A stretch of 64,000 nt of DNA from the NCBI GenBank assembly GCA_964188305.1, contig OZ076896.1; one strand, given 5' to 3'. Made by a program: the position numbers and the translations under genes. The notes under the pieces were generated by a model. It made no database searches. It was not told where the DNA came from and saw only the letters and a program-made list of their open reading frames with translations. Source of the DNA: Podarcis bocagei. Taxonomy: Eukaryota. Positions 3,201 to 60,345 of the stretch are shown in pieces. The stretch's first letter is position 1. Every line of letters starts with the position of its first letter.

Positions 3201-6200
3201 GTGAAAGCTAAACTTTTCTATGTTGGTCAAGCTGCACCACACACACAAAAAATGGCTGGAAGGAAAACTGATCCCCTGACCCCCTTTGTGTTGTGTTTAT
3301 TTATGCGTGAGAGGTGAACTCTTGGCATATTATCAAAATGTCCTGAACAAGGGTCCTTTTCCCTTTCTGTTGCAGACAGCTCAGCAGAAGAAGCAGGCCT
3401 CCAGATTGGAGATATTGTGATGGCTGTCAATGGAACAGATGTTAGCAGCATGCCACACTCAGAGGCTGCAAATTTGGCAAGAAAAGGTAATGATACCAAT
3501 ACAGTTAACTGCTTTGCTGTGGTGGTTTTTTTTGTCAGGTTTTTTGAACCAAGATTTGTCAGTTTTTACAAACAAAAACCATAAACTTAGATAGTGGAAA
3601 TAAATAGGAGGCAACATTTTTTAAATAAATTGTACATAACATAGCAGTCCCGCCCCCAACACTTGAATCTCAAAGAATTTTGAATGTCCAAGGATTTTTA
3701 CACACACACTTGCTCCTGCTCAAAAGTCTGTTGCAAGTATGGACAGGGGAGAAATTAAATTCAGTTTGCATTTAAAAGAAAAACTTCCAAAATCACACTT
3801 TCCAAAACAATAGACGAACCAAAACATAGCCATCTCTTGAAATCCACACTCCTTGAAATTTTGCAGCACAGTTTTCCAGCCAAGGAATGTCTTCAAACAG
3901 GCATATATTACTAAGGCATGGGGTTCATGGAAACAGTGAAAATAACTTATGTATTAGAATAGGGAAATTTGTTTTGCAGAAATGCGTATATTAGGCAAAA
4001 TTGCATACAAACATGTGTATATTAGGAGAAATTCGCACTAAAATGCTGATAAATTTTCACGAGGCCTAAAATATATATCAAAAACTGATGTGGAAATGGG
4101 GAGAGAACTGAAGACTGGAAAAATGAGAAGCACAAAATTGACAGGTCTGCCTGTCACTAATTGAAGGTGTATGGGAGCATTTTGTGCAACTATTAATCAA
4201 TTCCTTGGTTCAGGAACTATTCAGTCCTTGCCTTGCCCAATTTTGTCTAGTCACATTTGGCTATATAGATTTTAAAAATCCACTTTCTAGGAGCCTAACA
4301 TCCTTCTGTTCACCAAACTCACTACCAAAGAGCCAGCACTCTTCAGGAGCTACAATCAGACTTTTATCTCCATGAGCTGGAGAGTGACAGGGTTGGTGAT
4401 GAAGGCAGAACTTGACATTTTTATTCCTGCTCACATGTAGTAGGCTTTACACAAGTTCAGAATGCTCGAAAAGGGCTGTTGTGTTATCCAAGATGAAAAT
4501 GTTTCTGTTGAGAAACATGTGAAGGAGCTTTGGGCAGGCTGTTCTCCTACCTGCATGTGCAAAAGAAACTCTGGCCTAGGGATTATTTTCCTTCATGAGT
4601 TCTTGCAATAATTGCAAGGGGGAAAGCAGGAGCAAATTAAAGAGAGGCCAGAGAAAACAGATTGACATTTCTGATGTAAGTGTGCTTGAAAGTGCCACAG
4701 ATTCAATTTTAAAAAAGAAAAAAAATCTTTCAAAGGAGAGCCTACCTATGAATTTTATCACTCAGCTGCATTGGAAAAGCTGACTTTGACAGTAAGGGCA
4801 AGTTACTTTGGACATGCGGAGACTGATGGAGCAATAAGGTGACAGTGATCCGAGAGGAAAGCCTTGGTTGGATAAAAGACCCTCATTTTCTCTTTGTGCC
4901 AGCTACTAATATTGTTATCTGCTCATAGTATCACTTAAGTCTAGGCCAAAATGTCAGGTGGAAAGAGCACATTTAGCAATATTGCTTTTGGGTCCCATGC
5001 CTCAAAGACAGATGGGTCCTGACAGTGGCCTTCAAGACATCAATCTACTATTTATCTCTGGTGTTTCTTCAGGAGGAAAATTCATAGCTGGCTCAATGAA
5101 CACGTTAGACCTGTCTGTGTATAAGAGAACCAACATCCAGGTGCAACTAATATGTTACTTGATGAGGAGAGTGTTTTATACCGGGCAAACAAAATGCCAC
5201 TTAAATTAATTTTGAATTATTTCCCTGGAATATATTAAAATCAAACTGTACCCTTTAGTGCATGTCAGTTACTTCCACCATATACTGAATTCCACCATGC
5301 TATGAATTTGACAGAGATCAATAAAGGTTTAATAATGAAAAATGATTTCACAAGTGACTGACAAATTTACCTTGACACACATACCAAATTCTTTAATTAT
5401 AGGAGTGCAATTCACACACTTGCGTTGAAAAGAATGGCAGTCATTTACCACATCTATCTCTATTTACTAAAGAGTGTTTTTTAAAAAAATATTGTCAGGA
5501 TGCCCCCTCGCATCAACCAGGCCTTAGGCTGATTAATATCCAAACACCCTTGTGAAAACAGGGGGTTATTGGTTAGTTTTCATTTTATTATGTATTTTGT
5601 GTTCTCATTTTGTATTTTGTATTGGATAAAAGGCGGTATACAAATTTAGTAAGTAATAATAATATGGAAGAGTTTTGCCCACCTCCCTGCTTCATAGACT
5701 TGGCTTTAATTTACCTTGTAATAGACCACAATATAATCAAATATTTCAGGTCCAGATATCTTGACATTGTTGGTTGGCTCTGATATCAGTCGTTGTCCCA
5801 ACACCCCTCGCCCAACATGTCGAGGATATCTGCACAAACGAACCCAGTCAGGAATCCTGAAGGGCTGGAGGAAGAGATGGTTTGTGCTAAAGCACGATGG
5901 CTGCCTCTACTATTACAAACACAAAAAGGTAAGGCATGTGTATAATTATTTCGTTTGTCCATTGAGGGAGCACGCTGGTAGTGGGTCTGTCCAAATTAAG
6001 TACAGTTGTACCTTGAAAATCAAACGGAATCTGTTCAGGAAGTCTGTTCGACTTCCGAAAAGTTTGGAAACCAAGGCACAGCTTCCTATTGGTTTCCAAT
6101 TGTGCAGGCATGCCGGAAACAATAGCGGAAGCCGCGCCAGATGTTCGGCTTCAAAAAAAATGTTCAAAAACTGGAACACTCACTTCTGGTTTTCAATTGT

Positions 6201-10083: not shown

Positions 10084-13000
10084 GGAGCAGCAAATAGTCG
10101 CGTTGCTCAAAACTGTATAAGATTTCTCGCCAGCTTACCGGCAGACATTTCCTCCCAAAGGTAGATACATAAAACTCTGTTTAAGAACCACGCTCTGCAT
10201 TACAGTAGGCGCACAATCTTAGTGCCTTCAGGAAGCCCCAAGGCAAAGAGCTTGTGCAACTGCGTAGCAAAGGACAGCAAGAAAGACAGGGAAAGACCGT
10301 GTACTTCCTCACCACAGCAGCGGGTCACTCAGACAATCTAGGTCAACAGAACCTAGTCTTATAAACTATTAATAGATGGGTTAGCCTGATTATCACCAGA
10401 GGGCGTTGGTTATCTGAAGATGTGTGTTGCCTGGGCTATCTTATTATCTCAGTCTATTCTTCTCTAAGCCAGGTAAACCTAATCCCGCAAGTGTGGGTTG
10501 TGCGTACAAGCTTCCCTTCTGTACATACACGTACGCCACTTGCCAGATTGACTTCCACATGTCCAACGGCTACTACATACATGGCTCCCCTGGCCAGATG
10601 CCAGGGGAATTGTTTTATTTTGGGGATCTTGCATTCCATACCAAGTAGATGTTTGCCAGCCTTGGGAGAAGAAAAGGAATCAAGGCTTGGAGAGGAATTG
10701 GACCCATCCCCTAAACTAATAATTGGTTGTGTAAGAGCTGAGAGCTTCCTAAGTAGCAGTTGTAAAGGAGTTGGCCAGTTTGGGCAACTAGCCGTCCATA
10801 GGCTTTTTAAGCCAGTGATGGGGAAGCTGTGGCCTTCCAAATATCATTGGATTCCAGCTCCGAGACCCTCCAATTGCAAGGGATGATGGGAGTTGGAGAT
10901 CAACAACATATGGTGGGATAAAGGTTCCACATCTCTCTACTTTAAGCATTATTGCATGGTCTGTTTTGGCCAAGGGGGACAATATAGGTTGAAGACCATT
11001 CAGATAGATAAGCATCAGTACATCATCTAAATTGACACCCTGGAAGTCAGATTGAATATGAACAATTTTGCTTTTGCAACATAGATGCCAAACTCATCAT
11101 AACAAGTACAAGATCACTCTATCTCTGCATGGAGCCAGCACAGCTTCACTTTTTGGACAGCTTTGCAAGTAATGGCAGCTGAGAGATACAATATATTCAC
11201 TGTGATAATTGGCATAGAATTAGCCATAGTCCTTCTAAAACACTGTGTCACAATTGACCAGCTTCAGAAAGCATCCAGCACAACCTGTACTCTGAGCAAT
11301 CTCTCTTGCCTGGAAGCCACCAGCCCATTTCAGACATAATGCTTAAAGGTAAAGGTAAAGGGACCCCTGACCATTAGGTCCAGTCATGACCGACTCTGGG
11401 GTTGCAGCGCTCATCTCGCTTTATTGGCCGAGGGAGCCGGTGTACAGCTTCCGGGTCATGTGGCCAGCATGACTAAGCAGCTTCTGGCAAACCAGAGCAG
11501 CGCACGGAAATGCCGTTTACCTTCGCGCCGGAGCGGTACCTATTTATCTACTTGCACTTTGACATGCTTTCGAACTGCTAGGTTGGCAGGAGCTGGGACC
11601 GAGCAACGGGAGGTCACCCCGTCGCGGAGATTCGAACCACGACCTTCTGATCGGCAAGCTCTAGGCTCTGTGGTTTAACCCACAGCGCCACCCGCGTCCC
11701 TTAGTTTATGCTTAGTTGTGAGAAAATACAACCATGAGCCTTTCCTTATATTATTGCCTTCCTCCTCCCCTTCTTCTGTCCTTCACATGCTTAGAAGGAG
11801 GGCAGGAACAGGACAGTGCTCTCTCTCCTGTGCTCTCTATCAGTTGGTATTCAGACAAATACTGATACTGAGGGTAATAAATAGCCATCGGGACTATATG
11901 TCCTTACAGAATCATTGAATCAAAGATCTGTACAGTTGGAAGGGATCAAGAAGTCTCATCTAGTCCAACCCCCTGCAATGCAGATATCATTTGCCCAGTG
12001 TGGGAATCGAACCCATGACCCTGAAATTGGTCTCCTGCTCTACCAACTGAGCTAAAGTTGGACTATAAAAAATAATTTGGGGTATTAATTTTCCCATACA
12101 TATTTCACCTGTTGTTGCCTCCACCCCCCTATGATTGAACCAAATAACGGTTGCAAGGTGAAAAGAGAGGGAGAAAAAAATCTTTGAAATTATCTTAATT
12201 TCCAACATTGCATCCGGAGCCCAGTTTATATAAAATACATTTTCAGCTCCCTGGGTCTGCGCCTTTCACATTGTCTCACTCCCTGATGGAACATCCAAGC
12301 CCGTCTTCTTTCAAGCCCACGTATTCACTGCTAAGTCTAAGTGGTTTATATAAAAGGCTTAACTATAAATAGATTTAGGTCTGAGCTATTCCTCCTAGAG
12401 GTACAATGTGCATTTGCTCTCCATTCTAACAGAGAGCTTTATCCTCCACAGGCAGAAAGTCGTCCCATTCTATATAACCAGCCTGCAATCTGATTCCATT
12501 TGCAGAGCCTCTGTGAGGCCCATTGTGAGTGGATTGGTTTGCTAATTAAACACTATGGTTCTATCTAGGCTCTAATTCCACAAAAGCTTATGTCACAATA
12601 AATCTGTTGGTCTTTTAAGGTGCCGTGACACTCCCTTAGGCATGCTTTGTGTTTCCTCTGATTAGTCACTGATTAATTTTCTTTGCAGATGGAAAGAGCA
12701 ATCTACAAGTTGCATGCTAGGGAGTTGCACGACCTTAGATTGGAGTTCCACTCCTGTTTCCAGCACAAAGTGGACTACCCAGTCTAGGCCCCTGTGGGTT
12801 GGAAGCTCACTACATTGTGAGCCACTGTACTGAGGAAATGGTTTGGGTACCACAAAGGAGTGGGGAGGGTAATGGTAAAGGTAAAGGACCCCTGGACGGT
12901 TAAGTCCAGTCAAAGGCGACTATGGGGTGCGGTGCTCAACTCACTTTCAGGCCGAGGGAGCCGACGTTTGTCCACAAATAGCTTTCCGGGTCATGTAGCC

Positions 13001-16000
13001 GGCATGACCAAACCGCTTCTGGTGCAACGGAACACCATGACGGAAGCCAGAGCGCACGGAAACACCATTTACCTTCCCACCACAGTGGTACCTATTTATC
13101 AACTTGCACTAGTGTGCTTTCGAACTGCTAGGTTGGCAAGAGCTGGAACAGAGCAACGGGAGCTCACCCTATCATGGGGATTCAAACCGCTGACCTTCTG
13201 ATCGGCAAGCCCAAGAGGCTCAGTGGTTTATACCACAGCGCCACCCATGTCCCGTGTGGGGAGTGTAGAAGCAATGTGACTCACACCCTCCCGAGACACA
13301 CCCCTCACCAACCCTGCCTTGCACCCTGCTTGAGTTTCTTTGCCCTGAACTCTAATAATGGCTCTGGATGGAGGATAGAAGGGGAAGTGTGGCTGTGGAC
13401 TCAGGTGAATTTTGTCTCTGGACATGCCCACCATTGACATTTCGCCCCCGGGGTTCTACCTAGAAGGGAATGTTACTCTCAGTCTGAAAAAAGTTCCCCC
13501 ACCCCTCATCTATAGCAGAGTCACCACCTTGGGCCAAAGATTGTGGGGGGCTCAGTGGCCCAGTGTGCACATGGTGGTGAAAGGAGGTACATTGTTGGTA
13601 GGAGGCCTTGCTCAGTGCCATGCAACTTCAATGTCCATGGCTCCTCTTCTCTCATGCTCAGGAGGAGCCTGCCTTTCATGCTTCGCCATGCTCAGCTTGG
13701 CTAAGGAATATTGAGGGGGGCTGGCAACACCACTGCCCCCTAGAGTTGGCACACCTGATCTATAGGAAGCTGTTGGGAGTGGTGATTAGAAGATTCACAA
13801 CATGGTGTCGCCAGTGGGCTGATGATACCTAGCTCTGGTTCTCTGTTACAGCTGAATTGAGTATGGTGGGGCAAGTCCTAAGCTCGTGCCTAAACAGGGT
13901 GGTGGGCTAGATGACGGCCAATAAGCCCAATCTTTAGATGGAAGATCTGTGGGCGAGTGATTCCTGGGTGTACGTGCCTCTTCTGGGCTGGGTTGCAATC
14001 TCTCTGAAAGAATAGATGCACAGTCTAGGGGTAGTCCTTGATCCATCTTTATCTGTGGTGACCTTAGTGGCTAAGAGTCCCATAACATTGGCTGCTATGC
14101 CATTATAGCTTCAGGGAATCATTCATTGGTAACCTTGGGATTGGACTATTGTAATGTGACACCCTACAACTCCCATAATTCCTGACCATTTGAATATGCT
14201 GTCTGGGGCTGATGGGAGCTAGAGTCCCCATCAATGGTCCAAACAGTGCTAGTGATTCTGCATACAAAATGGGACAGTGGGTCTTATTTGAGATTAATTA
14301 TGCCACACTAAAAGGATCTGACCTTGTTTATGTAGTCTTAGACATGCAGCAAAATGCTTATGCTTCTCTCTAATGGCTCATTTGCATTTTTGAATATTTT
14401 GCAACTTTTGTGTTGCACAGCTGGACTGGGGGAGGCCTGGAATGGATCTGCATTTCTGCTTTTTCTCTGGCCGGATTCCTCCACCTCTGCCATCACCACC
14501 ACCACAGAGTTTACAACAGATGGTGGATGAGAGCAGACAATATAATGTTGTAATGACTCAGATATGAGAAATCATCATGTCTCAAGTAAAGCAGACCTTG
14601 TGCTTTTTTCCCTTTCCGTTTTTTACAGAGCACAGTCCTCTATTTGGTGGGCTGTCCTGTCCAATATTAGGAATCATCAAAGGGGAGCTTGTACAGCAGA
14701 CTAACAGAGTCTGTGACTGCATAACACCTGGTCATAGTCTTTGTTGTCATGCTGCTATATAGATTTAATTACAGTTATTATTTCTACATTTATATCTATA
14801 GATATAAATTAGCATGTGCTTCTTTTCTGCAGATCGGTACCATCTTTTATTGTGTATTTGTGATGCATTTCCTTATTTTTTGCAATACAAGCCCTTCGCT
14901 GAAATTTAGGGAGGGCCTGCTTTGACAAAATTTGTTTGCTCTTACGATCAACAATCTGGTGTGAAAAGTAGATTGTGCTGAGACTGTTCCTGTTTCAGAT
15001 GGTAAGATTGTCAGTGATGCTTCACAACAGAAGTAAGAAAAAATGAGTGTAGTAAGAAAATAGTCCAGTAAATGCAGGGTTGAAACTGAGTCTAAGAGGT
15101 CTGGGGTATAAGTTGGACAGACTCATTGCGTAGATTTGGTGAGCTATTTCCTTTCATCAGCCTGTTCCACTGGCTTGGTTCAGGTATAGCACAAAGCCAT
15201 GGTTTGTTTGAACCTAAGACTGCCCACAAACTGTGGTTGACAAATATTGATTTAGAATTGCAATTGGAGCCTGGTTTGAAAAACCACCATTTTACAAGCT
15301 GATCTGCACACTACTCTTTGCTGTTGTGCCTGAATTCAAGCACCATTGACCAACCACAGTTAAAGTCATTACTGCACCGTAAGAGGCTGCTGTGCTGGGG
15401 AGATGGAAGTGAACTTATGAAGCTGAGCCTTGAGCAAATGAGAAACAAAAGCTGACAAGTAGCTTAAGATTGTTGTTTGCCTGCTGTGCACATGGAAGCT
15501 AAAACCATGGAGTAGGTTCTTTAGTATGCTTAGCACAAACCATGCGTTCCATTTTGCATTACATCTGAACTCATCCACAGTCTCTTTAGGGAGTGATCTA
15601 AACCAGTGTTTCCCAACCACTGTTCTGCGGCACACTAGTGTGCCGCGAGATGTTGTCTGGTGTGCCGCGGGAAAAATTAAAAAATTCGAAAGATTTTTTT
15701 TTTAAAAAAGTCAAATTTTCGATTGGGGCGCCGTCACTAGATGACCCCTGGGGTTCCCTCCCTCCCTCCCGCTCTGTGCCTCCCTCCTCCTCCTCCTCCG
15801 GGGAGGCCCTTCCTGGCTCTCGGCCAAGGCTTGGCGGCTGCCACTCACTCACTCGCTCGCCCACCCGTCCCTCCATCCCTGCACCCGGCCTCTCCCCCTC
15901 CGTCCCCGGCGCGGGGGCTGCCGGGATCCGTAGTCCCCTCGCCCTTGGGCTCCGCGCCCGCGCGGGGTGCACGAACTACGTTTCCCAGCGTGGCCTGGCG

Positions 16001-19000
16001 GGCCGGGCGTTTTGTTTGAAGCGCTCTTCTCCCGGCCATGGAATGAGCGCAGCGGCGGCGGCCGGGCAGGCAGGGGCTCTTCCGCGCAGACCCCGCGCAG
16101 CCTGCCTGCGCCCCCGCGGAGATCGGGCGGCAGGATGGAGCCCGGGGATCCCCGCGGAGGCGGAGCGGCGGCAGCGGAGGCTGCCCCCCAGGTAGGGCTG
16201 CGTCGGGGGGGTTTATTTTTGCAATGCTGCATCCGCGCCGGAGGGGACGCATCGGACCGCGGGGAGACCCCTTGGCGGGCGTGCAAGGCAATGCCTGCGT
16301 GCAGGCTTTGCATGGAGTGCAGTGCAATGCAATGGCAACGCGGCGCCCTGCATGCATGCATGCAACTTCCACCGGCGCTCCGGACTTGGCAGGTGAGGGG
16401 GGTCCCCAGTGGGCGGCAGAGAGAGACGGGAGGGCGAAGGGGAGCCGGGGGGGGAGCAGCGCTGCTCCCCGAGCCGAGCCCAGGGGGAAACTTCGGCGTC
16501 GTTGCGCCGGGTGTTGGAAGCGGAGGCTGGAGGGGGCCCCTCACCTGCAAAACCTGGTCGCCTCTCATATATTTCGTGCATTGCATTCATCGCCCGCTTT
16601 CTCCTCCAAGGAGCTCCCGGGGGCGCGCGTGGTTCTCCCCGTGTTATCCTCGCAACAACAGCCCTGCGAGGTGGGTCAGGCGAGTGGCCCAATGGAGCAC
16701 CAAGGGATTGTCCTGGCCAGGTGGGGTGATTTGAACCCTGCTCTCTGCCCGGTCTTCGTCCTCATTTAGCCCCCACATGTGCATGACTGTGCATGACTGA
16801 GGTTTTCCCCCCTCGTCTTGGCTATGGTGTGAGTCTGTGCTGTTAATTAATGGGGTTCTGCCTTCGGAGAAGATGAGCCAGCCCTCAAGGAGGTGATTAT
16901 GTAATTTGCTAGCAATTCATGTCCCTCCCGGCGTGACGCTGTGCGCTGACGTCACGGGGCTGTAATGGTGGTGTGCCTCGAGATTTTTTTCATGAAACAA
17001 GTGTGCCTTTGCCCAAAAAAGGTTGGGAAACACTGATCTAAACTGGTGTTGGCAGTCAGCACAAAGGTCAGCACACAGCATTCCCATTGGGAAATTCTGG
17101 GAATGAGGTTGCATCAGGAAACAAAATGCATAGTTCATCAAGGGAGGAGCTTAATAGATCACACTTGCAAAGGAAAGTATGACCTAATTTTCACAGCAAT
17201 TGCTATGTAAGTATATTAGGCATGTAGTGATCACATGCTCTGAGAAGAGTCCTCTCAGAGTTAAAAGCAGAAGAGCACAAAGGTAGTCTTTACTTTTGCT
17301 GCAGGGTTTTACTTTTTCTGAAATATTGAAGTTGGTCAAAATAAAAACCACAGCCGCTGGAAATTTAGAGTAGGCTGTACAATAGGAAGTGTTAGAGGGT
17401 TGGTTCACTGCAAGCAAAGGGCTAAGACATTTTGCTGCTTGAGGCAAAGGACCAGATGGTGCAGTCCATGTACGGAAGCCAACTGGACTGGAGGGTGAAT
17501 GGTACATCAACAGGACAGTGTCCTTCGCCACACTTGAGGGCAGTAAGCTAGCTTGGGAGAAGCTCTGTCCTCCAACACTTTGTCACCACTGCCCCTCTTC
17601 CCCTACTATCTGCTACCTGAGGCAACTACCTCACTGTGCCTAAGGATAGGGCCAACTCTGTGAAAGCCCAAAATGATTCCCCTAAAAAAACACAACTAAG
17701 TCCAGCATCATAGGAAAAGAACAGGATCCTCATGTAAAAAATAAAATGTGATCCTCTTGTAAAACGTATCCAAAGCATGCAAGTATTTTCTCTTCTTTAT
17801 CTCACATTCGGGGGAGGTTAATGCATATGTTTCCTTCTAAGTAGAGCAAAAGGGATTGGGACAGCTGCAGTGAATCCCCTTGACTTTAAAGAGACGGCAT
17901 GATTATCCTCAGGGACCCTCCCAACTCTACAATTCTATGATTCTATGGAATCAGCTTCTTTTGGGGAAATCCCATAGTACCTGGCTTTACTATGCAATCT
18001 TTGCTTTTTAGATGAGAAGCAATTTGTGGAATTAAAGGGGATGTTTAGCAAAAACACCACCACCATGTCTCTTAAGCCCCCCCCCCCCACGGCTTTTCTC
18101 AAAAACTTTTTTTCTTCTTCTTCTTGTCTTCATTTCAGGATGAAGGAAAGTGCAGACCATTAGAAGTCACAAAGTTAGAAGGTGCTGAAATTGGTGTGGA
18201 CAGTACCCTGGGCAAGCCCTTTGTATTTAAGTGCATTCCTCAGACTGGAAACAGGATTTTTTACTTCTGTGCCACATCAAACCAAGAGATGAAAAGGTAC
18301 ACAATCCACTCACTACATTCCTTTCTATGTTTTCTTTCTTCCTAGTTCTGCAAAATGGATTTGCTTATTAAGGTCAATTGCATAAGCAGCAGGAGAGAAA
18401 ACATTTGCACTGAGATTTAATTAGGGTTACCACATATACAATTCTCCCCTCCCCCATCAGCATTCTGTCAGTAACTTGCATAATATGTTATTTTATTTTG
18501 CATTCCTCTGGTTTTTTGTTGTTCTTTAGCATAATCATTTAAGAAAAGCAGTCCTGGATGGACCAGACCAAAGGCCTCTCTGATACAACATTTTCCATTT
18601 ATTTATTGCATTTATATCCATCTTTCCTCCATGGGGCTTGAGCTGATGTACAGTTCAACCTCACAACAATTCTCTGAGGTAGAGGTTAGACTGCGAGTGA
18701 GTGACTGGCCCAAGGTCACCCAGAGGCCTTCATGGCCAAGTGAAGATTAGAACCCTGGTCTCCCAGGTCCTAGTCCAACACTCTAACCACTTCACCACAC
18801 TGGCTCCCTGCTTGTTTCCAACCAGCTTCCTGTGGGAAATCAGCAAGCAGGGTATGAGGTCAACAGCCTTCACTCACTGTGATTTCCCCAGCAACTGTAT
18901 TCAGCCTGCTTTCAAGATTTCCATTTGCGCATTCTCTGCATATTCTATACATACATAATTCCTTCTCCTACTAGGAGACACCAATACTGTTTTGGATATA

Positions 19001-30371: not shown

Positions 30372-30500
30372 CAGGCATAGGCCAACTTGGCCCTCCAGAT
30401 GTTTTTGGCCTACAACTCCCATGATCCCTAGCTAACAGAACCAGTGGTCAGGGATGATGGGAACTGTAGTCCCAAAACATCTGGAGGGCCGAGTTTGCCT
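30372..30500. mobile_element. Palindromic hAT-type MITE with inverted CTACA.CTCCCA motifs
   Basis: GGCCCTCCAGATGTTTT...AAAACATCTGGAGGGCC inverted arms; left flank CTCTAGAA. Confidence 0.8.
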
Positions 30501-34622: not shown

Positions 34623-35668
34623 CAGTGGTACCTCAGGTTACATACGCTTCAGGTTACATACGCTTCAGGTTACAGACTCCGCTAACCCAGAAATATTACC
34701 TCGGGTTAAGAATTGTATAATCTGATATTAGAGTGGGAAACAAAGGATGAATTAGTTAAAGCATCAATGATTAAATGGGCGCAAGATATTGGGAAAAATA
34801 TTATGTTTGAACAATGGGAGAAATTGTGGAAAGAAGATATGAAATTCACCATGTGTTATATACTGAAAGAAAATTACCTTAAGATGCAACATAGATGGTA
34901 TTTAACACCTGAAAGAATAGCAAAAATGAATAAAAACTGTAGCGATATCTGCTGGCGATGCAACACGGGAAAAGGTACTATGACACATATATGGTGGAAT
35001 TGTTTAAACATCAAACAATTTTGGGAAATAATATATAATGAAATGAAAAAAATGTTTAGATACTCATTTAGGAAAACGCCAGAAGGTTTTCTATTGGGAA
35101 TAGTACCAGGAAGCCTAAAGGAAGAAGATAAGACCTTATATTTATACGCAACAGTAGCAGCAAGGCTATTGATTGCGAAAAACTGGAAAAGTGGTATAAT
35201 ACTGACAAAAACAGAGTGGCTTGCCAAATTATTGGAGTATTACAATATATCCAAAACAATGGAAGAAATTGGAAGGATTTCAAAAGAAAAGATAGATAGG
35301 GACTGGAAGGTGTTTAAAATATACTTGCAAAATCATATCGAAAAATCAGAACTCCTATTAGAATAAACAAGTTCCGTTTCAAATACTGAAATATCAAATA
35401 AGATGGAAAACAATGTGTAATAGAAAAAGAAGAAGGAAATTAGGGTAAAGGTGTGTGAAAGAAAGTAATAGAAGTGTAAAGAAATTGTAATTGAGTAGAT
35501 TGGAAGTCAAACACAAAGGTGGGGTGAAGGGTTGGTGGATGGTGATGGGGAAAGGAACTATTTGTGGGATTGAGTGTAAGTATGTTTGAACATTTTTAAG
35601 GATTGTATGAAATGTATGTTTGTATGCTTGTATATGTGTATTAATGATGAATTTAAATTAATTAAATA

Positions 35669-36246: not shown

Positions 36247-37511
36247 TTTTTTATTGAATTTTCAATTTTACAAACAAAACAAACATTTTACATACTATTA
36301 AATATGCAGTGACTTGCCTCCCTCTCCTTCCTTTGTTCATTTTTATCTTCTCTTCCTGCATATTTTTTTGGGGGGGCGGGAGTTATTTTAAACATTTTTT
36401 TCCAGCTTATTATATATCATTTCCCAATATTCTTTTACCTTTTTACATGTCCACCACATATGAAAAAGTATGTTCCATTTCTTTACATTTCCAACACATA
36501 TCTGATTCTGATTTATACATCTTAGCTAAATACCATCTATGAATCATTTTCATATAATTCTCTTTCAGTGAATAACATACAGTAAATTTCAAATCGTATT
36601 TCCAAAGTTTCTCCCAGAGGTTTAAGTCTATATTATGCCCTATATCTATTGCCCAGTGTGTCATTGAAGTTTTAACTAACTTGTATAATTTTATACTAGA
36701 ATGGGAAACAAAAGACATTTTAGACAAATGTTTATCCTTGCTCTGTAATAATTCTCTTTCAAATTGTGAGCTTTGGTCCCAAACCTTATTTTTTAAATTT
36801 AGCTTAAACATCTCATTTAACTGGTAGTATTGTAACCAATCTGTGACTCAACTCCTTAAGTCTTCCATAGGTTCCAATCTGGGCTCCCTCCCTGTAAAAT
36901 CCAGTAGTTCCCTATAAGCCACCCATTGTCTATCCATATTAACTCTTTTAATTGTAATTGCTTCAATGGGAGATAACCATAGAGGTGTTTTCCTTTCCAA
37001 CAATTTTTTATACTTCTCCCAGACTCTATGTGGTTCGTAAAACTCTTATAAATTTTACCTTTCCTGTACCAAAGACAAACATGCCAGCCAAATTTTATGT
37101 CATGACCCTCCAGATCTAAAATGTCTGCATTTTCCAATACGATCCATTCTTTTAACCAATACAAGCATGCTGCTTCATAATACAATTGCAGGTCTGGCAG
37201 GGAAAGCCTCCTCTTTCTTTTAAATCTATCAAAATTTTGTGTTTAATTTCTGGCTCCCCCCCCCCCATCAGATAAATTTGGAGATGACTTTTTTCCATTC
37301 TTTGAGCCAACTTAAATTATTTACAATTGGGATTGATTGGAATAAAAACAATATCTTAGGTAATACATTCATTTTAATGGCTGAAATTCTGCCTAGCAAA
37401 GAAAGCTTCATCCTTCCCCAATCTGTGTCCAAATCTAAACAGAGAAGAATCTTTTCTTTTTTCTCAAACACTGCCTTGAAAGATTAACATTTTTGTTAGT
37501 TAGCTGTGTTC
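36247..37511 (-). mobile_element. Degraded 5'-truncated L1
   Basis: Frameshifted pieces [40 protein letters not shown] and CWKCKEMEHT; A-rich tail near 36247. Confidence 0.88.
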
Positions 37512-38473: not shown

Positions 38474-40356
38474 GGGGAAGCGGGTGGCACTGTGGGTTAA
38501 ACCACAGAGCCTAGGACTTGCCGATCAGAAGGTCGGCAGTTTGAATCCCCGCTATGGGGTGAGCTCCCATTGTTCGGTCCCAGCTCCTGTCAACCTAGCA
38601 GTTTGAAAGCACGTCAAAGTGCAAGTAGATAAATAGGTACTGCTCCGGCGGGAAGGTAAACGGCGTTTCCATGCACTGCTCTGGTTCGCCAGAAACGGCT
38701 TAGTCATGCTGGCCACATGACCCGGAAGCTGTACGCCGGCTCCCTCGGCCAATAAAGCGAGATGAGCGCCACAACCCCAGAGTCGGCCACAACTGGACAT
38801 TTCGAAATTTGTCTGGCAGGGCAAAAAGCCCAGAATAAAATTCAAAATACTGACAGATGCAAAAGAAAGAGGGGGATTTGCCCTGCCGGACTTAAAATTG
38901 TACTATGAGGCAGCAGCGTTTTGCTGGCTGAAAGAGTGGATGCTCCTCAAGAATACAGATATCTTGGACTTGGAAGGTTTTAATAATGTATTTGGTTGGC
39001 ATGCATATTTATGGTATGATAAAATCAAAGTGCATAGGGCCTTTAAAAATCATATTGTCAGAAAAGCTTTATATAATGTATGGATAAGATATAAAGATCT
39101 GTTGGAAAACAAAACCCATAGATGGTTGTCACCCTTGGAGGCTAAAGCATTAAAAAAGCTCAATATGGAGGCCGGATGGCCAAAGTATTGGGAAATTTTG
39201 GAACAAGAAGGAGATAAATTGAAGTTACAGAGTCATGAGAAATTGAAACCCAAGGTACGAGATTGGCTCCATTATTATCAAATAATGGAGGTGTACAAAC
39301 AAGATAGGAAAATTGGCTTCCAGGTGGAGAAATCAAAATTAGAAACTGAACTGTTAGAGCCCAATACTAAGAATTTATCAAGAATGTATAACTTGCTGCT
39401 GAAATGGAATACGCAAGATGAAACAGTCAAATCAGCTATGATTAAGTGGGCACAGGACATTGGTCATAACATCATGTTTACTGACTGGGAATGGTTGTGG
39501 AACACCGGGATAAAATTTACGGCATGTAATGCCTTAAAGGAAAATATTATGAAAATGATTTACAGGTGGTACATGACCCCAGTCAAGCTAGCAAAGATTT
39601 ATCATTTGCCTGACAATAAGTGTTGGAAATGTAAAGAATCTGAAGGTACTTTTTATCACCTTTGGTGGACGTGCCCAAAGATTAAGGCCTTCTGGGAAAT
39701 GATTTATAACGAAATGAAAAAGATACTTAAATGTACCTTTCCCAAGAAACCAGAGGCCTTCCTCTTGGGCATTGTCGGCCAATTGGTGCTAAAAGGAGAC
39801 AGAAACTTTTTTATGTACGCTACAACAGCAGCAAGAGTTCTCATCGCAAAGTATTGGAAGACACAAGACCTACCCACTTTGGAAGAATGGCAGATGAAAG
39901 TGATGGACTACATGACACTGGCTGAGATGACCGGCAGAATCCGTGATCGGGGGAAGGAGACGGCGGAAGAAGACTGGAAGAAGTTTAAAATTTATCTTAA
40001 GGACTATTATAAACTTGATGAATCTTAAAATGTCGAGGCTTTGAGAACGAAAGGGTTACAGTGATATAAGATTAGATTCAAGGAAAGATTAGGAAGACAT
40101 ATTTCGGATAGAACTATTTAAAAGTTGCTGAAAAACTTTGGACATTGGGATGCAGAAAGGGGGGGTATGGGGGAGTCCGAGAAACAAGGTTTATGAAAAA
40201 AGGTTATGAAAATTATACGTGTTTGTATGTCTTTTTTATATGTTTGTACTGTGTTAAAAAACTTTTGTAAAACTAATAAAAAATTTATAAAAAAAACAAC
40301 AACAGAGTCGGCCACAACTGGACCTAATGGTCGGGGGTCCGTCCCTTTACCTTTAA
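38474..40356 (+). mobile_element. Sauria SINE interrupted by an L1
   Basis: SINE body 38474-38798 and tail 40324-40356; 13-bp TSD TATTCCTTAGTTG at 38461-38473 and 40357-40369. Confidence 0.92.
38799..40302 (+). mobile_element. Young 5'-truncated L1 (uninterrupted 409-codon ORF2 C-terminus 38799-40028)
   Basis: KERGGFALPDLKLYYEAA motif, CCHC CWKCKESEGTFYHLWWTC, AATAAA plus A-rich tail; 21-bp TSD CAGAGTCGGCCACAACTGGAC. Confidence 0.93.
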
Positions 40357-49397: not shown

Positions 49398-52038
49398 GAC
49401 CCAGAAATGGGTCACAGCAGACATCCTGTCTCAAAGCCTCCCATCTATGTAGATTGTTACATGTTAGAAGAGCATGTTAATGTCGATTGGGGTCAGCCAT
49501 TCCTCTCTTCCTCAAACAGCCCCAGGAACAATGCTATGTTACAATTGTTAATTGCATTTATCTATTCAAAAGCAAACAGGAATGCTATTGGGTTGTTTCA
49601 CTGGTGCTTGAAAAGCAGCAGCAATATCTCTATTGAAGAAAGGGTGGGGGGACTCTGCCAACTTGTCAGTACAGTAAGTCACCACCCTAAAAACCTCCCC
49701 ATTTAGCGGATGGATGGATGGATCCCAATCGAAATGTATGCATGTATGTTTGGGTGCGGGGGTAAATATTCAACCCCACCCCAATTCTGATTGTGAAAAG
49801 ATGCACACAAACACCTCCCATCTGAAGCCGTTTGTGGAAGGCAACAGATATGCAATAATTCTCAATTGTTGCTCGCTCTTTTGTTAACTCCATTGTTTTT
49901 GTTGTCTTACCAGCCTCTCCTCCAGATAATTTCTAAAGCCTGACTTTCAGCTGCTTTCTCTTGAAAGGGGTGCACAGAAAAACCCCCACTCAGCTGCAGA
50001 TGCAGACTTTCTTCAGCTTTAATGATCTGAACAATCTCTTAAGAATTTTAACAAAGCAAAGAAAGCAATAATAACAATTCACTTTTTCCCAGTATTATTC
50101 CAAACAATGAAGAGATTCTGGCACTTTTTACTGAATTCAATTTTCTGTCACTGAGGCAGAGAAGACAGAGTCAGGCAAAACACAGGGGAAAACAGAGCCA
50201 TAATGATATATGAGTGCCTTCTGAAATCTTGCCATCTTGTGCTTCGTATCAGCACATTTGAAAAGGCTTGCTCTAAAATCCAAATTAACTACCAAGCCTT
50301 CCTGAAATATTAAATTTCTCCATGGCTAAGAGCAGGCAGAAAGCAATATTGATTTAATCCTCAGCTGCCTACCATGAATGAGATCATCACACTTGCATGA
50401 AATGTAAATTAAGGCTGTTAAGATATTAAGGATGCATCAGTCTATCATAGCTCCAAAATCAACATTATTATTTTCTTCACTGGGTTTTCATAGCACTCAT
50501 TTCTGGCAATATATAATTGTTCCAGACAGTTTGTGCTGCTTTCGTTTCTCCCTTAAAAATTATTATTGCAGAGGACGCTTTACCCGTTATCTTTTCAGGT
50601 GTACTTCCACAGGGCATGACCTCTTAGCCCCATCCCCTATATGGATTATTTCAGAGAGAAAAAGCCTCCATTATGCATTATGGGGATTTTCTCTGGAATC
50701 ACACAACTCTGGAGAGCATATGTGGATGGGTCTATGCACCTGAAAAGGGTGAATACAACACTTGCAATTTATAGAGCTCAGAATTTTCATGTTACTAGAC
50801 ATTTCTCTTTGAAGTGGAGATGTGACAATCTAGAAACAGTTACAAATAAACGTTTTGTACAGGCAATATGGTGCAATGGTTATCGACTTGGACTAATCCT
50901 TGCTCAGCCACTCAACTCACTGGCTGACCACTTACTGTATCTGAAAATAAAGATGAAGAGGACCACATATGCTGCCTTGAGGTCTGTGGAGGAAAGGCAA
51001 GTTATAAATACAGCACGCTATGGTGTAGTCATGCGAGTTTGTATGAAAACACCCACCTATCTTTGGGTGGTCTCCGAATAGTTGATATTCATGTGAGTGT
51101 TTATGAGCAATCTGTATGGCTGACCACCCAAACTGCCCTACCAGAGGGCTTTACCATTTGAATAATAGCCTGAGGCAGCTTCGAGAATTGCATTGCAGAA
51201 TGTGAATTAAGAGTAATTTTACAAGACGGCTACGTTTCGGTTCTCGGGAATGTTCAAATTTGATAAATTCCAAGTGAATCAATTCTTTCCCCCCATTGCA
51301 ACTCTGGAGTGATCAGCTTTTTAACATCTGCATCCACGTTCTCGCACACATACACAAAGAGAAAATGCAAAGGAGAGGCACAGAGAGGAGATAAAAGCAG
51401 CCAGGTTCACAAAGCGCAGTGTCCTTGTGTGACCCCTATAGCATGCTGGCTAACACGCCCGGCAGCTATTAGATGATGTGGACTGACACACACAGTTCCT
51501 ACTGTCAGCAGTGGAATGTCACAATGGAAAACATAAATAATGCTTCCTGACACTTGGCAGATAAACGGCTTTAGAATCCTCCCCCTCCCGCACCACCTAT
51601 CACCATGTGCGGGGATTCACTAATGAAAAACAGGGATTAAAGGCTGTCAATCACATGACAAGTGTGGGGAACTGTTGAAGTTAAGGCACAGACAGGTAGA
51701 GAAGAAAAGCTTGCCGGTCGATGTTAAATGTCAAACTCATTTTATTTTCAATCTGCATTTTACTAAACTGCTAATTTTTCGGTTTAGGTTTTGTAACTGG
51801 ATTGCCTTGCATGCATTTTGAGAATGCATTTTGTTTTATGTTGCTGCAATTGTGTGTGGAAGCGGCCTTGAGAAGCCCTTGCAGTGCAGTGTAATGGTTA
51901 AGAGTGTTGGCTTGAGACCAGAGGTCAAATCCTTCTTCTACCATGAAGCTCATTTGGACCAGTCGCTGTCTCTCAGTCTAAGTTGGGGGGCTAAAATGGG
52001 GAGCACCACCTTGAGATCCTTGGAGGAAAGGCAGGATA

Positions 52039-52391
52039 GGTAAGGTAAAGGAAATCCTGACCATTAGGTCCAGTCGCGACCGACTCTGGAGTTGCAGCGC
52101 TCATCTCGCTTTACTGGCCGAGGGAGCCGGCATACAGCTTCCGGGTCATGTGGCCCGCCTGACTAAGCCGCTTCTGGCGAACCAGAGCAGCGCACGGAAA
52201 CGCCGTTTACCTTCCCACTGGAGTGGTACCTATTTATCTACTTGCACTTTGACGTGCTTTCGAACTGCTAGGTTGGCAGGAGCAGGGACCGAGCAACGGG
52301 AGCTCACCCCGTCAGGGGGATTCGAACTGCCGACCTTCTGATCGGCAAGTCCTAGGCTCTGTGGTTTAACCCACAGCGCCACCCGCATTCC
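52039..52391 (-). mobile_element. Sauria SINE
   Basis: Closely similar to 11345-11700. Confidence 0.9.
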
Positions 52392-59286: not shown

Positions 59287-59913
59287 TCATGTGTTGTTCT
59301 GAGCAAACATACGGTCCCCTCTTAGGGTGAGGTGTTGGAGCTGATACTGAAGTACGTCTGTGTCGGCTGGTTCCTTGATGTTCATTCTGTCCAGATTGAG
59401 GTAGTCTAGGGATTTAGAGTGAGCCCTTTTACCCTTGAAAAGGCAAAGAGGCAAAGGACCGTGAAAAGCCTTGTAGGGTTCATAAGGTAGTGGCTTGGTG
59501 CATTTATCCCCTGAGCTGGGCATCCGCCTCCTTCTCCGGCCATTGATAGCCGGGATCTCGTAAGGCTGGTAGTACCTGCTTCTGGCTTTACACACCCGGG
59601 AGGAGCGGGAAAGTCCTGAATCGAGCTGTTTGGAACGCAAAGTAGGCACTACCGCTTCGACTTTGTTCTCCTCCCCTACAGTGCACTTCTGAGCTAATTT
59701 CAGCAACTCCTCCCCTGTCGTGAAGCCAACCAAATAGTTAGAATCCATGTGGAGGATCTGGTAGCCTGAAACAGTTTGGCGCATCGGCGAACATGGGGTG
59801 CTGGAGCAGCGAGGTTTCTCGGACTCGGCCTTGCCGGTGGCACTCACATCAGCAATAGGCAATGGGAGAGTAGCTAGGATAGACCTGGACTCCCCATTAA
59901 TGTCAACTTCCAT
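59287..59913 (-). CDS. MACIR: Macrophage immunometabolism regulator (C5orf30), 208 aa, complete CDS in one exon
   Basis: MEVDINGESRS...KPRCSSTPCSPMRQTVSGYQILHMDSNYLVGFTTGEELLKLAQKC...NGRRRRRMPSSGDKC...LQYQLQHLTLRGDRMFAQNNT is recognisably MACIR. A TTTCCAG acceptor at 59935/59934 lies 21 nt upstream of the ATG, so the 25 extra residues in the ORF track are intron/UTR. Confidence 0.96.
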   Translation of the reverse strand: MEVDINGESRSILATLPLPIADVSATGKAESEKPRCSSTPCSPMRQTVSGYQILHMDSNYLVGFTTGEELLKLAQKCTVGEENKVEAVVPTLRSKQLDSGLSRSSRVCKARSRYYQPYEIPAINGRRRRRMPSSGDKCTKPLPYEPYKAFHGPLPLCLFKGKRAHSKSLDYLNLDRMNIKEPADTDVLQYQLQHLTLRGDRMFAQNNT

Positions 59914-59996
59914 TTTAAATATGAATCGGCTAGCCTGGAAATACAAAAACAAAACAAAAAGCAGTTTGATTAGTGTGTTGCAATGCACAGAGCGGC

Positions 59997-59997
<1 letters not shown>

Positions 59998-60037
<40 letters not shown>

Positions 60038-60345
60038 TTTTATTTATACCCCGCCCTCCCCAGCCAAGGCTGGGCTCAGGGCGGCTAACAAGCAATAATA
60101 AAAACAAGTTGAATGAATACAACTTAAAAACAAGATTAAAATACAATTAAAATATTGAAACATTAAAATATTAAAATGCAGCCTCATCACAGGAGGAGAA
60201 AGGAAAAAGGAAAAAGAAAGCGGGGGAGCCAGGTTGAAAACCCTGGCTCTGGTTGAAGCTAATCTAACTTCCTTAGGGCCCGGGACCACTAGGGTGTTGC
60301 TATTTATGGACCTTGAGGCTCTCCGTGGGGCATACCGGGAGAATT
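59998..60345 (-). mobile_element. L2-clade LINE 3' end with (ATT)n tail in the last MACIR intron
   Basis: SRYAPRRASRSINSNTLVVPGPKEVRLASTRARVFNLAP remnant, 3' stem-loop region, microsatellite tail 59998-60036. Confidence 0.75.

Follow-up and report, generated by a model that had tools for sequence, protein, structure and literature searches.

A fairly young, multi-copy non-autonomous hAT transposon with a CpG-island-like interior in an intron of Podarcis bocagei

The window analyzed here is the whole stretch of 64,000 nucleotides taken from contig OZ076896.1 of Podarcis bocagei (GenBank assembly GCA_964188305.1). A PH-domain gene lies on its plus strand. One of the exon halves of this gene ends at 5928 (AAG/GTAAGG, phase 0; the slash marks the splice boundary) and the next one, 18139-18296, starts in phase 0 behind a good acceptor (tcatttcag/GATGAAGG). 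The intron between them harbors, in sense orientation, a transposable element (TE) of 1432 bp, measured between its target-site duplications (TSDs). This is a genuine multi-copy, non-autonomous hAT element (Charlie-like), which is fairly young and has a CpG-island-like interior.

Ends and size of the element

The ends were recognized by direct sequence inspection. A perfect 8-bp TSD (ATCTAAAC) encloses a perfect 15-bp terminal inverted repeat (TIR; CAGTGTTTCCCAACC), whose exact reverse complement at 17021-17035 closes the right side (Table 1). When up to two mismatches are allowed, the TIR matches at these two sites only, and a search for degenerate versions across the 64 kb gave no further sites. 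With 23 matched bases and ~3e8 position pairs, the chance expectation of this arrangement is ~5e-6 by our own arithmetic, so that the TIR and TSD bracket is not due to chance. The eight long open frames of the element were submitted to Pfam, which gave no match at E ≤ 1 and no transposase remnant. The original prediction had described perfect TIRs and a perfect TSD around 1432 bp devoid of transposase; coordinates, uniqueness in the window and the Pfam result agree with it.

TIRs of hAT transposons typically start with YARNG, and an 8-bp TSD together with a CAGTG-type start is a hallmark of the group. The TIR found here begins with CAGTG. With an 8-bp TSD, short TIRs of the YARNG type and no transposase of its own, the element belongs to the non-autonomous hATs. 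The TIRs of Anolis hAT families include CAGTGGTTCCCAACCT (hAT-N3_AC) and CAGTGRTTCCCAAA (hAT-HT3), and the target consensus is NTCTAGAN (Novick et al. 2010, PMC3014272). The TIR of the window differs from that of hAT-N3_AC by one mismatch, and the TSD agrees with the target consensus at 5/6 specified positions and fits nTnnnnAn as well. Lizard hobo families, in contrast, have different TIRs (TAGGCTTG...).

Subterminal repeats of the pattern GTGTGCCGYG follow the left TIR, GTGTGCCGCG being present twice (15638 and 15660) with an inverted copy at 15629. At the right end, GTGTGCC motifs are found at 16971 and 17001 and the palindrome TGACGTCA at 16947. When the element was compared with the 64-kb window by self-BLAST, neither a second copy nor a donor nor sibling termini were detected. 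Rfam gave no match over 15000-19000, and Tandem Repeats Finder reported four tiny microsatellites only. A composite "macrotransposon" made of two MITEs (miniature inverted-repeat transposable elements) was rejected as no inner TIRs exist.

Table 1. Positions of the element and its parts in the window.
Feature	Position	Strand	Remark
Left TSD ATCTAAAC	15596-15603	.	Fits hAT target consensus at 5/6 positions
Left 15-bp TIR CAGTGTTTCCCAACC	15604-15618	+	Starts CAGTG; one mismatch from hAT-N3_AC
Conserved left hAT terminus: TIR and GTGTGCCGYG repeats	15604-15672	+	Homologous to left end of L011 and to contig L016
A/T-rich linker from terminus to GC-rich interior	15673-15722	+	In all Logan copies, absent from L016
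CpG-island part of interior, putative promoter region	15723-16640	+	GC 0.67-0.74; CpG observed/expected 0.78-0.81
Putative 19-codon first coding exon MEPGDPRGGGAAAAEAAPQ	16135-16191	+	Donor GT 16192-16193; ends in phase 0
Old interspersed SINE-type repeat inside cargo	16560-16778	+	Homologous to window 18570-18800
Spacer between SINE piece and right terminus	16779-16919	+	No match in window
Right terminal region	16920-17035	-	TIR 17021-17035, GTGTGCC motifs, palindrome TGACGTCA
Right TSD ATCTAAAC	17036-17043	.	Perfect copy of left TSD

Copies at other sites, relatives of the termini and age

For the detection of further copies, a protein collection was searched which includes open reading frames (ORFs) taken from sequencing-run assemblies of Logan. 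A spurious 245-aa ORF on the minus strand of the interior (the cargo) retrieved four clusters, all of them from Logan. Fifteen contigs, derived from about 15 different ERR runs, were taken from those clusters, and 15/15 align to all or part of 15657-16950 with 96-98.6% identity. Every contig reaching the edge of the cargo runs on into hAT subterminal sequence, and none is donor-like. Of the contigs, 14 extend to the right side, and all of these end at 16949-16950; on the left, six contigs end at 15657. Position 15656 is T in the window and C in the contig L011. We infer that the left stops reflect branching of the assembly graph between copies with a common cargo. The right stop would mark either a terminus common to several copies, with its start near 16921 (k = 31), or a branching towards another type of element.

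The contig L011 (1406 bp, run ERR14032420) reads across the left TIR and on into 69 bp of flanking DNA. This flank is dissimilar to the one in the window, as CAGTGTTTCCCAACC is preceded by GGATAGAT in L011 and by ATCTAAAC in the window. This contig has the cargo and left junction of the window copy beside another flank, observed on the left side of one extra site, which makes the element multi-copy. TIR-flanked cargo at other sites had been expected beforehand, and L011 bears this out. Since the cargo-bearing element is present at ≥ 2 genomic sites, it was transposed after it had gained its interior. The left part occurs in three or more variants of its sequence (window, L011 and L001 type).

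An alternative history without such transposition was considered, in which a short hAT MITE already present at ATCTAAAC broke internally and was repaired in situ from ectopic DNA. Gap filling of this kind is the route of most of the 281 unique animal Pack-TIRs, i.e., TIR transposons with gene fragments (Tan et al. 2021, PMC8277862), and a TSD proves only that both ends were inserted jointly. A cargo-bearing element at a second site, as given by the flank of L011, removes this model, and it was rejected as largely refuted. The three or more left variants also disagree with it, and the breakpoints are close to the termini and not central. Moreover, self-BLAST of the window, which reaches 15.6 kb upstream and 47 kb downstream of the element, gave no donor locus, whereas 57% of gap-filled cases have a parental copy within 15 kb; this points away from gap filling too. 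In sum, cargo that never moved is a very improbable explanation.

The left terminus of L011 (window 15604-15700) is 89% identical to that of the window with an added 9-bp indel; in the cargo, divergence is far lower, 780 bp containing 11 substitutions (~1.4%). This gap in divergence could be due to members of the family having exchanged termini, to decay of CpGs in the subterminal repeats or to effects of the assembly path.

To find the termini in other contexts, metagenome contigs of the JGI were pattern-scanned for the TIR followed by GGTGTGCCG, and one contig was found (L016; Ga0247629_10033852, 1-1151), which is AT-rich and eukaryote-like. The terminus is located at 729-770 on its minus strand and consists of the identical 15-bp TIR and three GTGTGCCGYG repeats. 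L011 and L016 served as the relatives in the comparison of the termini. The first 65-70 bp from the TIR of L016 have 74% identity to the left terminus of the window and 82% to L011; past the TIR, the alignment of L016 with the window scores 55 (shuffles 29 ± 4.3). Beyond this terminus of ~65-70 bp, L016 consists of unrelated AT-rich DNA. Frames near the terminus gave only a sub-threshold match to Pfam Dimer_Tnp_hAT (E 0.11), and they read like a broken Charlie-type transposase. As L016 combines the same ends with another interior, the hAT ends appear to be separable from the cargo. Judged from these alignments, they would form a module with a conserved left part of ~65-70 bp, and the GC-rich interior would lie outside of it. 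Sibling ends with a different interior had been predicted, and L016, sharing TIR and terminus only, is such a case. The 100-120 bp of ordinary terminus proposed for each end were an overestimate at least on the left side, where conservation with relatives is limited to the stated length. The terminus in L016 hints at the same hAT lineage in a very different organism, possibly via horizontal transfer.

Over 1139 aligned bases, the window copy departs from the Logan majority by 15 substitutions (1.32%) and three indel events; about four of the 15 substitutions are CpG transitions. The Logan contigs differ among themselves by 0-4 substitutions per 780 bp. Such values are what a single, slightly aged copy shows when it is compared with the consensus of a repeat family. 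At 1.3% divergence, ~0.6 changes are expected in the 46 bases of TIRs and TSDs, and their intactness is therefore unremarkable. Likewise, a high CpG content does not require hypomethylation at this divergence. The proposal of a recent transposition holds insofar as "young" is a fair description of the window copy; "just transposed" exceeds the evidence, given 1.3% distance from the majority and three indels.

Origin of the interior

The interior (15731-16900) has a GC content of 0.67 and a CpG observed/expected ratio (o/e) of 0.73, whereas o/e in the flanking intron is only 0.10-0.21; its earlier designation as a CpG island is thus confirmed. GC climbs from 0.42 to 0.65-0.76 across 15700-16700. 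The core from 15731 to 16640 (GC 0.67-0.74, o/e 0.78-0.81) passes the usual CpG-island thresholds (> 200 bp, GC > 50%, o/e > 0.6), and o/e amounts to 0.35 in 16641-16900. The GC skew changes from -0.38 to positive near 15950-16000, which is ~150 bp upstream of an ATG at 16135. A sign change of this kind is typical of transcription start sites in CpG islands. The ATG has a Kozak context (A at -3, G at +4) and opens a frame of 19 codons, directly followed in the same orientation by the donor CAG/GTAGGG at 16192. As sequence features, the Kozak ATG, the 19-codon frame and the GT donor named in the original prediction are all present. The donor is followed by intron-like DNA with a repeat of the type of a short interspersed nuclear element (SINE) and without poly(A); the division into exon and intron is an anatomical one. 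The SINE-type repeat, which may be MIR/CORE-SINE-like and antisense, has a second copy ~2 kb downstream in the host intron. The local alignment of 16664-16761 with 18691-18776 reaches a score of 43 (shuffles 17.6 ± 2.2, z about 11). An embedded interspersed repeat which also occurs in the host intron is as expected for ordinary genomic DNA.

Taken as sequence anatomy, these features favor an ordinary piece of host genome as the source of the interior, specifically the 5' end of a gene, because a CpG island, a skew switch before a Kozak ATG, a donor in the same orientation and a CpG drop into SINE-bearing DNA occur together. A captured 5' end of a host gene is the best reading of the interior, and its chances are judged to be about even. 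The capture claimed in the original prediction stands as far as the interior is unrelated to transposase and has the anatomy of low-copy genomic DNA; the donor locus it implies was found neither in the window nor by the Logan searches.

According to this reading, the hAT ends (15-bp TIR and GTGTGCCGYG repeats) would be the module recognized by the transposase. The interior of ~1.2 kb would be foreign low-copy DNA, comprising a CpG-island promoter of the host, a short first coding exon, its donor and the first part of intron 1, in which an old SINE is embedded. This interior may have been gained a single time, through a switch of template in the course of replication or of the repair of a double-strand break. 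A related autonomous hAT would then supply transposase in trans and the whole unit would be moved by cut-and-paste, whereby each new insertion would create an 8-bp TSD. The window copy would thus have landed in sense orientation in the 12-kb intron of the PH-domain gene. Of all this, the host-gene origin, the capture mechanism and any promoter activity are what we infer.

Several observations weigh against the capture of a host 5' gene end. An upstream ATG of 2 codons is present at 16038, the 19-codon putative exon consists of low-complexity residues, too few for the protein searches used, without a detectable homologue, and GC-rich DNA yields long open frames and combinations of ATG and GT by chance. 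The motif ACTACnnTTCCCAG (ZNF143/SBS-like) occurs seven times in the window compared to 0.26 expected, mostly inside other repeats, and is weak evidence for the promoter motifs claimed in the original prediction. The second insertion site comes from one contig of a de Bruijn assembly, and Logan copies within one genome cannot be told apart here from copies across related species. Furthermore, the Logan ORF and protein searches recovered no donor locus, every contig being of the element type.

The ZNF143/SBS-like site ACTACGTTTCCCAG at 15975 had first been taken as promoter evidence and was dropped after seven matches were found in the window, mostly in other repeats. The further ACTACnnTTCCCAG sites are at 30457, 35932, 35985, 39485, 43506 and 43905, of which 35932 and 35985 form an inverted pair. 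Repeats of this genome seem to carry the motif.

Two further sources of the interior were weighed. Firstly, it could be non-genic filler in an ordinary non-autonomous hAT family, either GC-rich intergenic DNA or a mosaic of repeats, in which promoter, exon and donor occur by chance. Interiors of non-autonomous hATs are commonly unrelated to the autonomous element and the filler often holds other TEs (PMC3014272, PMC3260210). Chance open frames of 180-260 aa on both strands of GC-rich DNA, a promoter-like motif that is TE-borne elsewhere in the window and an exon without homologue also suit this explanation. It does not readily account for a 0.9-kb CpG island (o/e about 0.8), a skew switch, a Kozak ATG, a donor and a CpG drop that are arranged and spaced as in a real 5' gene end, and CpG density of the unmethylated type is unusual in intergenic filler. 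We consider filler unlikely.

Secondly, the element could be a Ds-like derivative arisen by internal deletion, whose interior is the promoter, first exon and intron 1 of the autonomous element itself, without any capture from the host. Terminus, CpG island, ATG exon, donor, intron-like DNA and terminus are the layout expected if the 5' part was retained, and a deletion junction, shared with some longer element, could explain the common contig break at 16949-16950. The lack of a donor locus in the Logan and protein searches fits as well. A precedent exists in maize, where the Ac transposase gene is multi-exon and Ds2 elements retain subterminal parts of Ac (Du et al. 2011, PMC3260210). Against this derivation speak the missing transposase-coding remnant in any long frame, the old host-type SINE copy inside the interior and the only relative of the terminus seen, L016, which continues into AT-rich DNA and not into this interior. 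An autonomous hAT of 2.2-3 kb could hardly accommodate a promoter and intron of 1.1 kb. Those 2.2-3 kb are the size of the autonomous Charlie-like hATs of Anolis (PMC3014272). A deletion derivative is rated quite unlikely, and slightly lower than filler.

For the host 5' gene end, the donor was searched for with further ORFs. The plus-strand ORF of the cargo and the ORF across the left junction of cargo and terminus were compared with a set of 5.8 billion proteins, and both gave no match. A HMMER representative search using the ORF formed by right terminus and flank resulted in only four matches, all of low complexity and to long proteins; neither siblings nor an empty site were among them. 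An exact look-up of eight window ORFs, including flank-only ones, returned 0 in the collection. As flank-only ORFs are absent as well, this look-up has no positive control, and it allows no inference about occupied or empty alleles at the locus.

Gene fragments inside TIR elements are known from several systems. Plant Pack-MULEs resemble the lizard element in being non-autonomous TIR elements with fragments of host genes, and they are biased towards GC-rich 5' ends. Unlike the lizard element, they belong to the Mutator superfamily and have 9-bp TSDs and long TIRs. In animals, 370 Pack-TIRs were reported from 100 genomes, of which 208 are hATs and four are multi-copy (frog, alligator); none was found in the lizard assembly anoCar2, whose annotation comprises just 77 TIR elements (Tan et al. 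2021, PMC8277862). The original remark that gene capture is rarely documented for vertebrate hATs is out of date in view of these 208 cases. Multi-copy TIR transposons with gene fragments are nonetheless very rare in vertebrates (4/370 Pack-TIRs, none in the surveyed lizard; PMC8277862). A Pack-TIR is defined by ≥ 10 bp of the termini of one element at both ends and an internal region of 100-5000 bp, and in addition by a unique parental copy of ≥ 90% identity and 80-120% length which is not TE-flanked, capture taking place at the DNA level and not by retrocopying (Tan et al. 2021, PMC8277862). In the element of the window, 15-bp TIRs of one kind enclose an interior of ~1.2-1.3 kb, which corresponds to the end and size limits. 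The parental copy, a defining property of that class, has no match here in the window or the Logan searches.

The closest counterpart is Pack-hAT-N8_XT of Xenopus tropicalis (PMC8277862), likewise a non-autonomous hAT with non-TE, host-like DNA in its interior and present at several sites. The frog sites have distinct TSDs. Their cargo is the 5' untranslated region of CAPSL (291 bp), whereas the cargo in the lizard is ~1.2 kb long and resembles a whole promoter, exon 1 and the start of an intron. Bat Helitrons (PMC4224331) are a vertebrate precedent for such cargo, as they amplify promoter, first exon and a portion of intron 1 with a bias towards 5' ends. The same kind of cargo is scattered there, and it can donate start codons and splice sites to host transcripts. 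In contrast to the rolling-circle Helitrons, the lizard element is a cut-and-paste hAT with TIRs and an 8-bp TSD; also, donors of the bat Helitrons were identified by cross-species homology, whereas the donor of the lizard element was not. Finally, hAT ends around ~1 kb of unrelated filler are known from maize Ds2 and Ds-l4 (Du et al. 2011, PMC3260210) and from Anolis hobo (Novick et al. 2010, PMC3014272). Such fillers are occasionally genic with introns, often contain other TEs and often have an untraceable source, but in contrast to the present interior, they were not reported as CpG-island 5' gene ends.

If the interior is a host 5' gene end, a cut-and-paste hAT amplifies promoter plus first exon, which in vertebrates has so far been the story of bat Helitrons. 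If it is the 5' end of the autonomous element itself or mere filler, the element is a member of an ordinary young non-autonomous hAT family. A wider proposal is that a recently active hAT family of the lizard lineage repeatedly captures CpG-island 5' gene ends and scatters them; this is possible, if on balance doubtful. If true, such a family would be the vertebrate cut-and-paste counterpart of Pack-MULEs and of the promoter captures by bat Helitrons, with portable promoters and first exons able to splice in frame into host genes. It may then systematically supply portable CpG islands, alternative promoters and chimeric first exons in a squamate.

Host transcript and other features of the window

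At the locus itself, an in-frame chimeric transcript is possible according to the predicted phases, as the putative exon 16135-16191 and the PH-domain exon at 18139 are both in phase 0. Such agreement of phases is expected by chance in 1 of 3 cases.

A homologue of MACIR/C5orf30 is encoded at 59290-60039 on the minus strand. It is a single long ORF with a full-length match to Pfam UNC119_bdg (E 4.6e-107), and a poly-Leu run encoded by a CTG/CAG repeat precedes it. One interspersed repeat is present in four copies, at 11340-11675, 12821-13198, 38555-38902 (minus strand) and 52015-52338. Their open frames share ...RLWGCSAHLALLAEGAGVQLPGHVASMTK...TARLAGAGTEQRE..., and the repeat is probably a SINE-type family. 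In addition, long related open frames with a weak zf-RVT match occur at 34710-35363 (plus), 36446-37242 (minus) and 38766-40025 (plus). These appear to be 3' fragments of ORF2 of a long interspersed nuclear element (LINE), present in both orientations.

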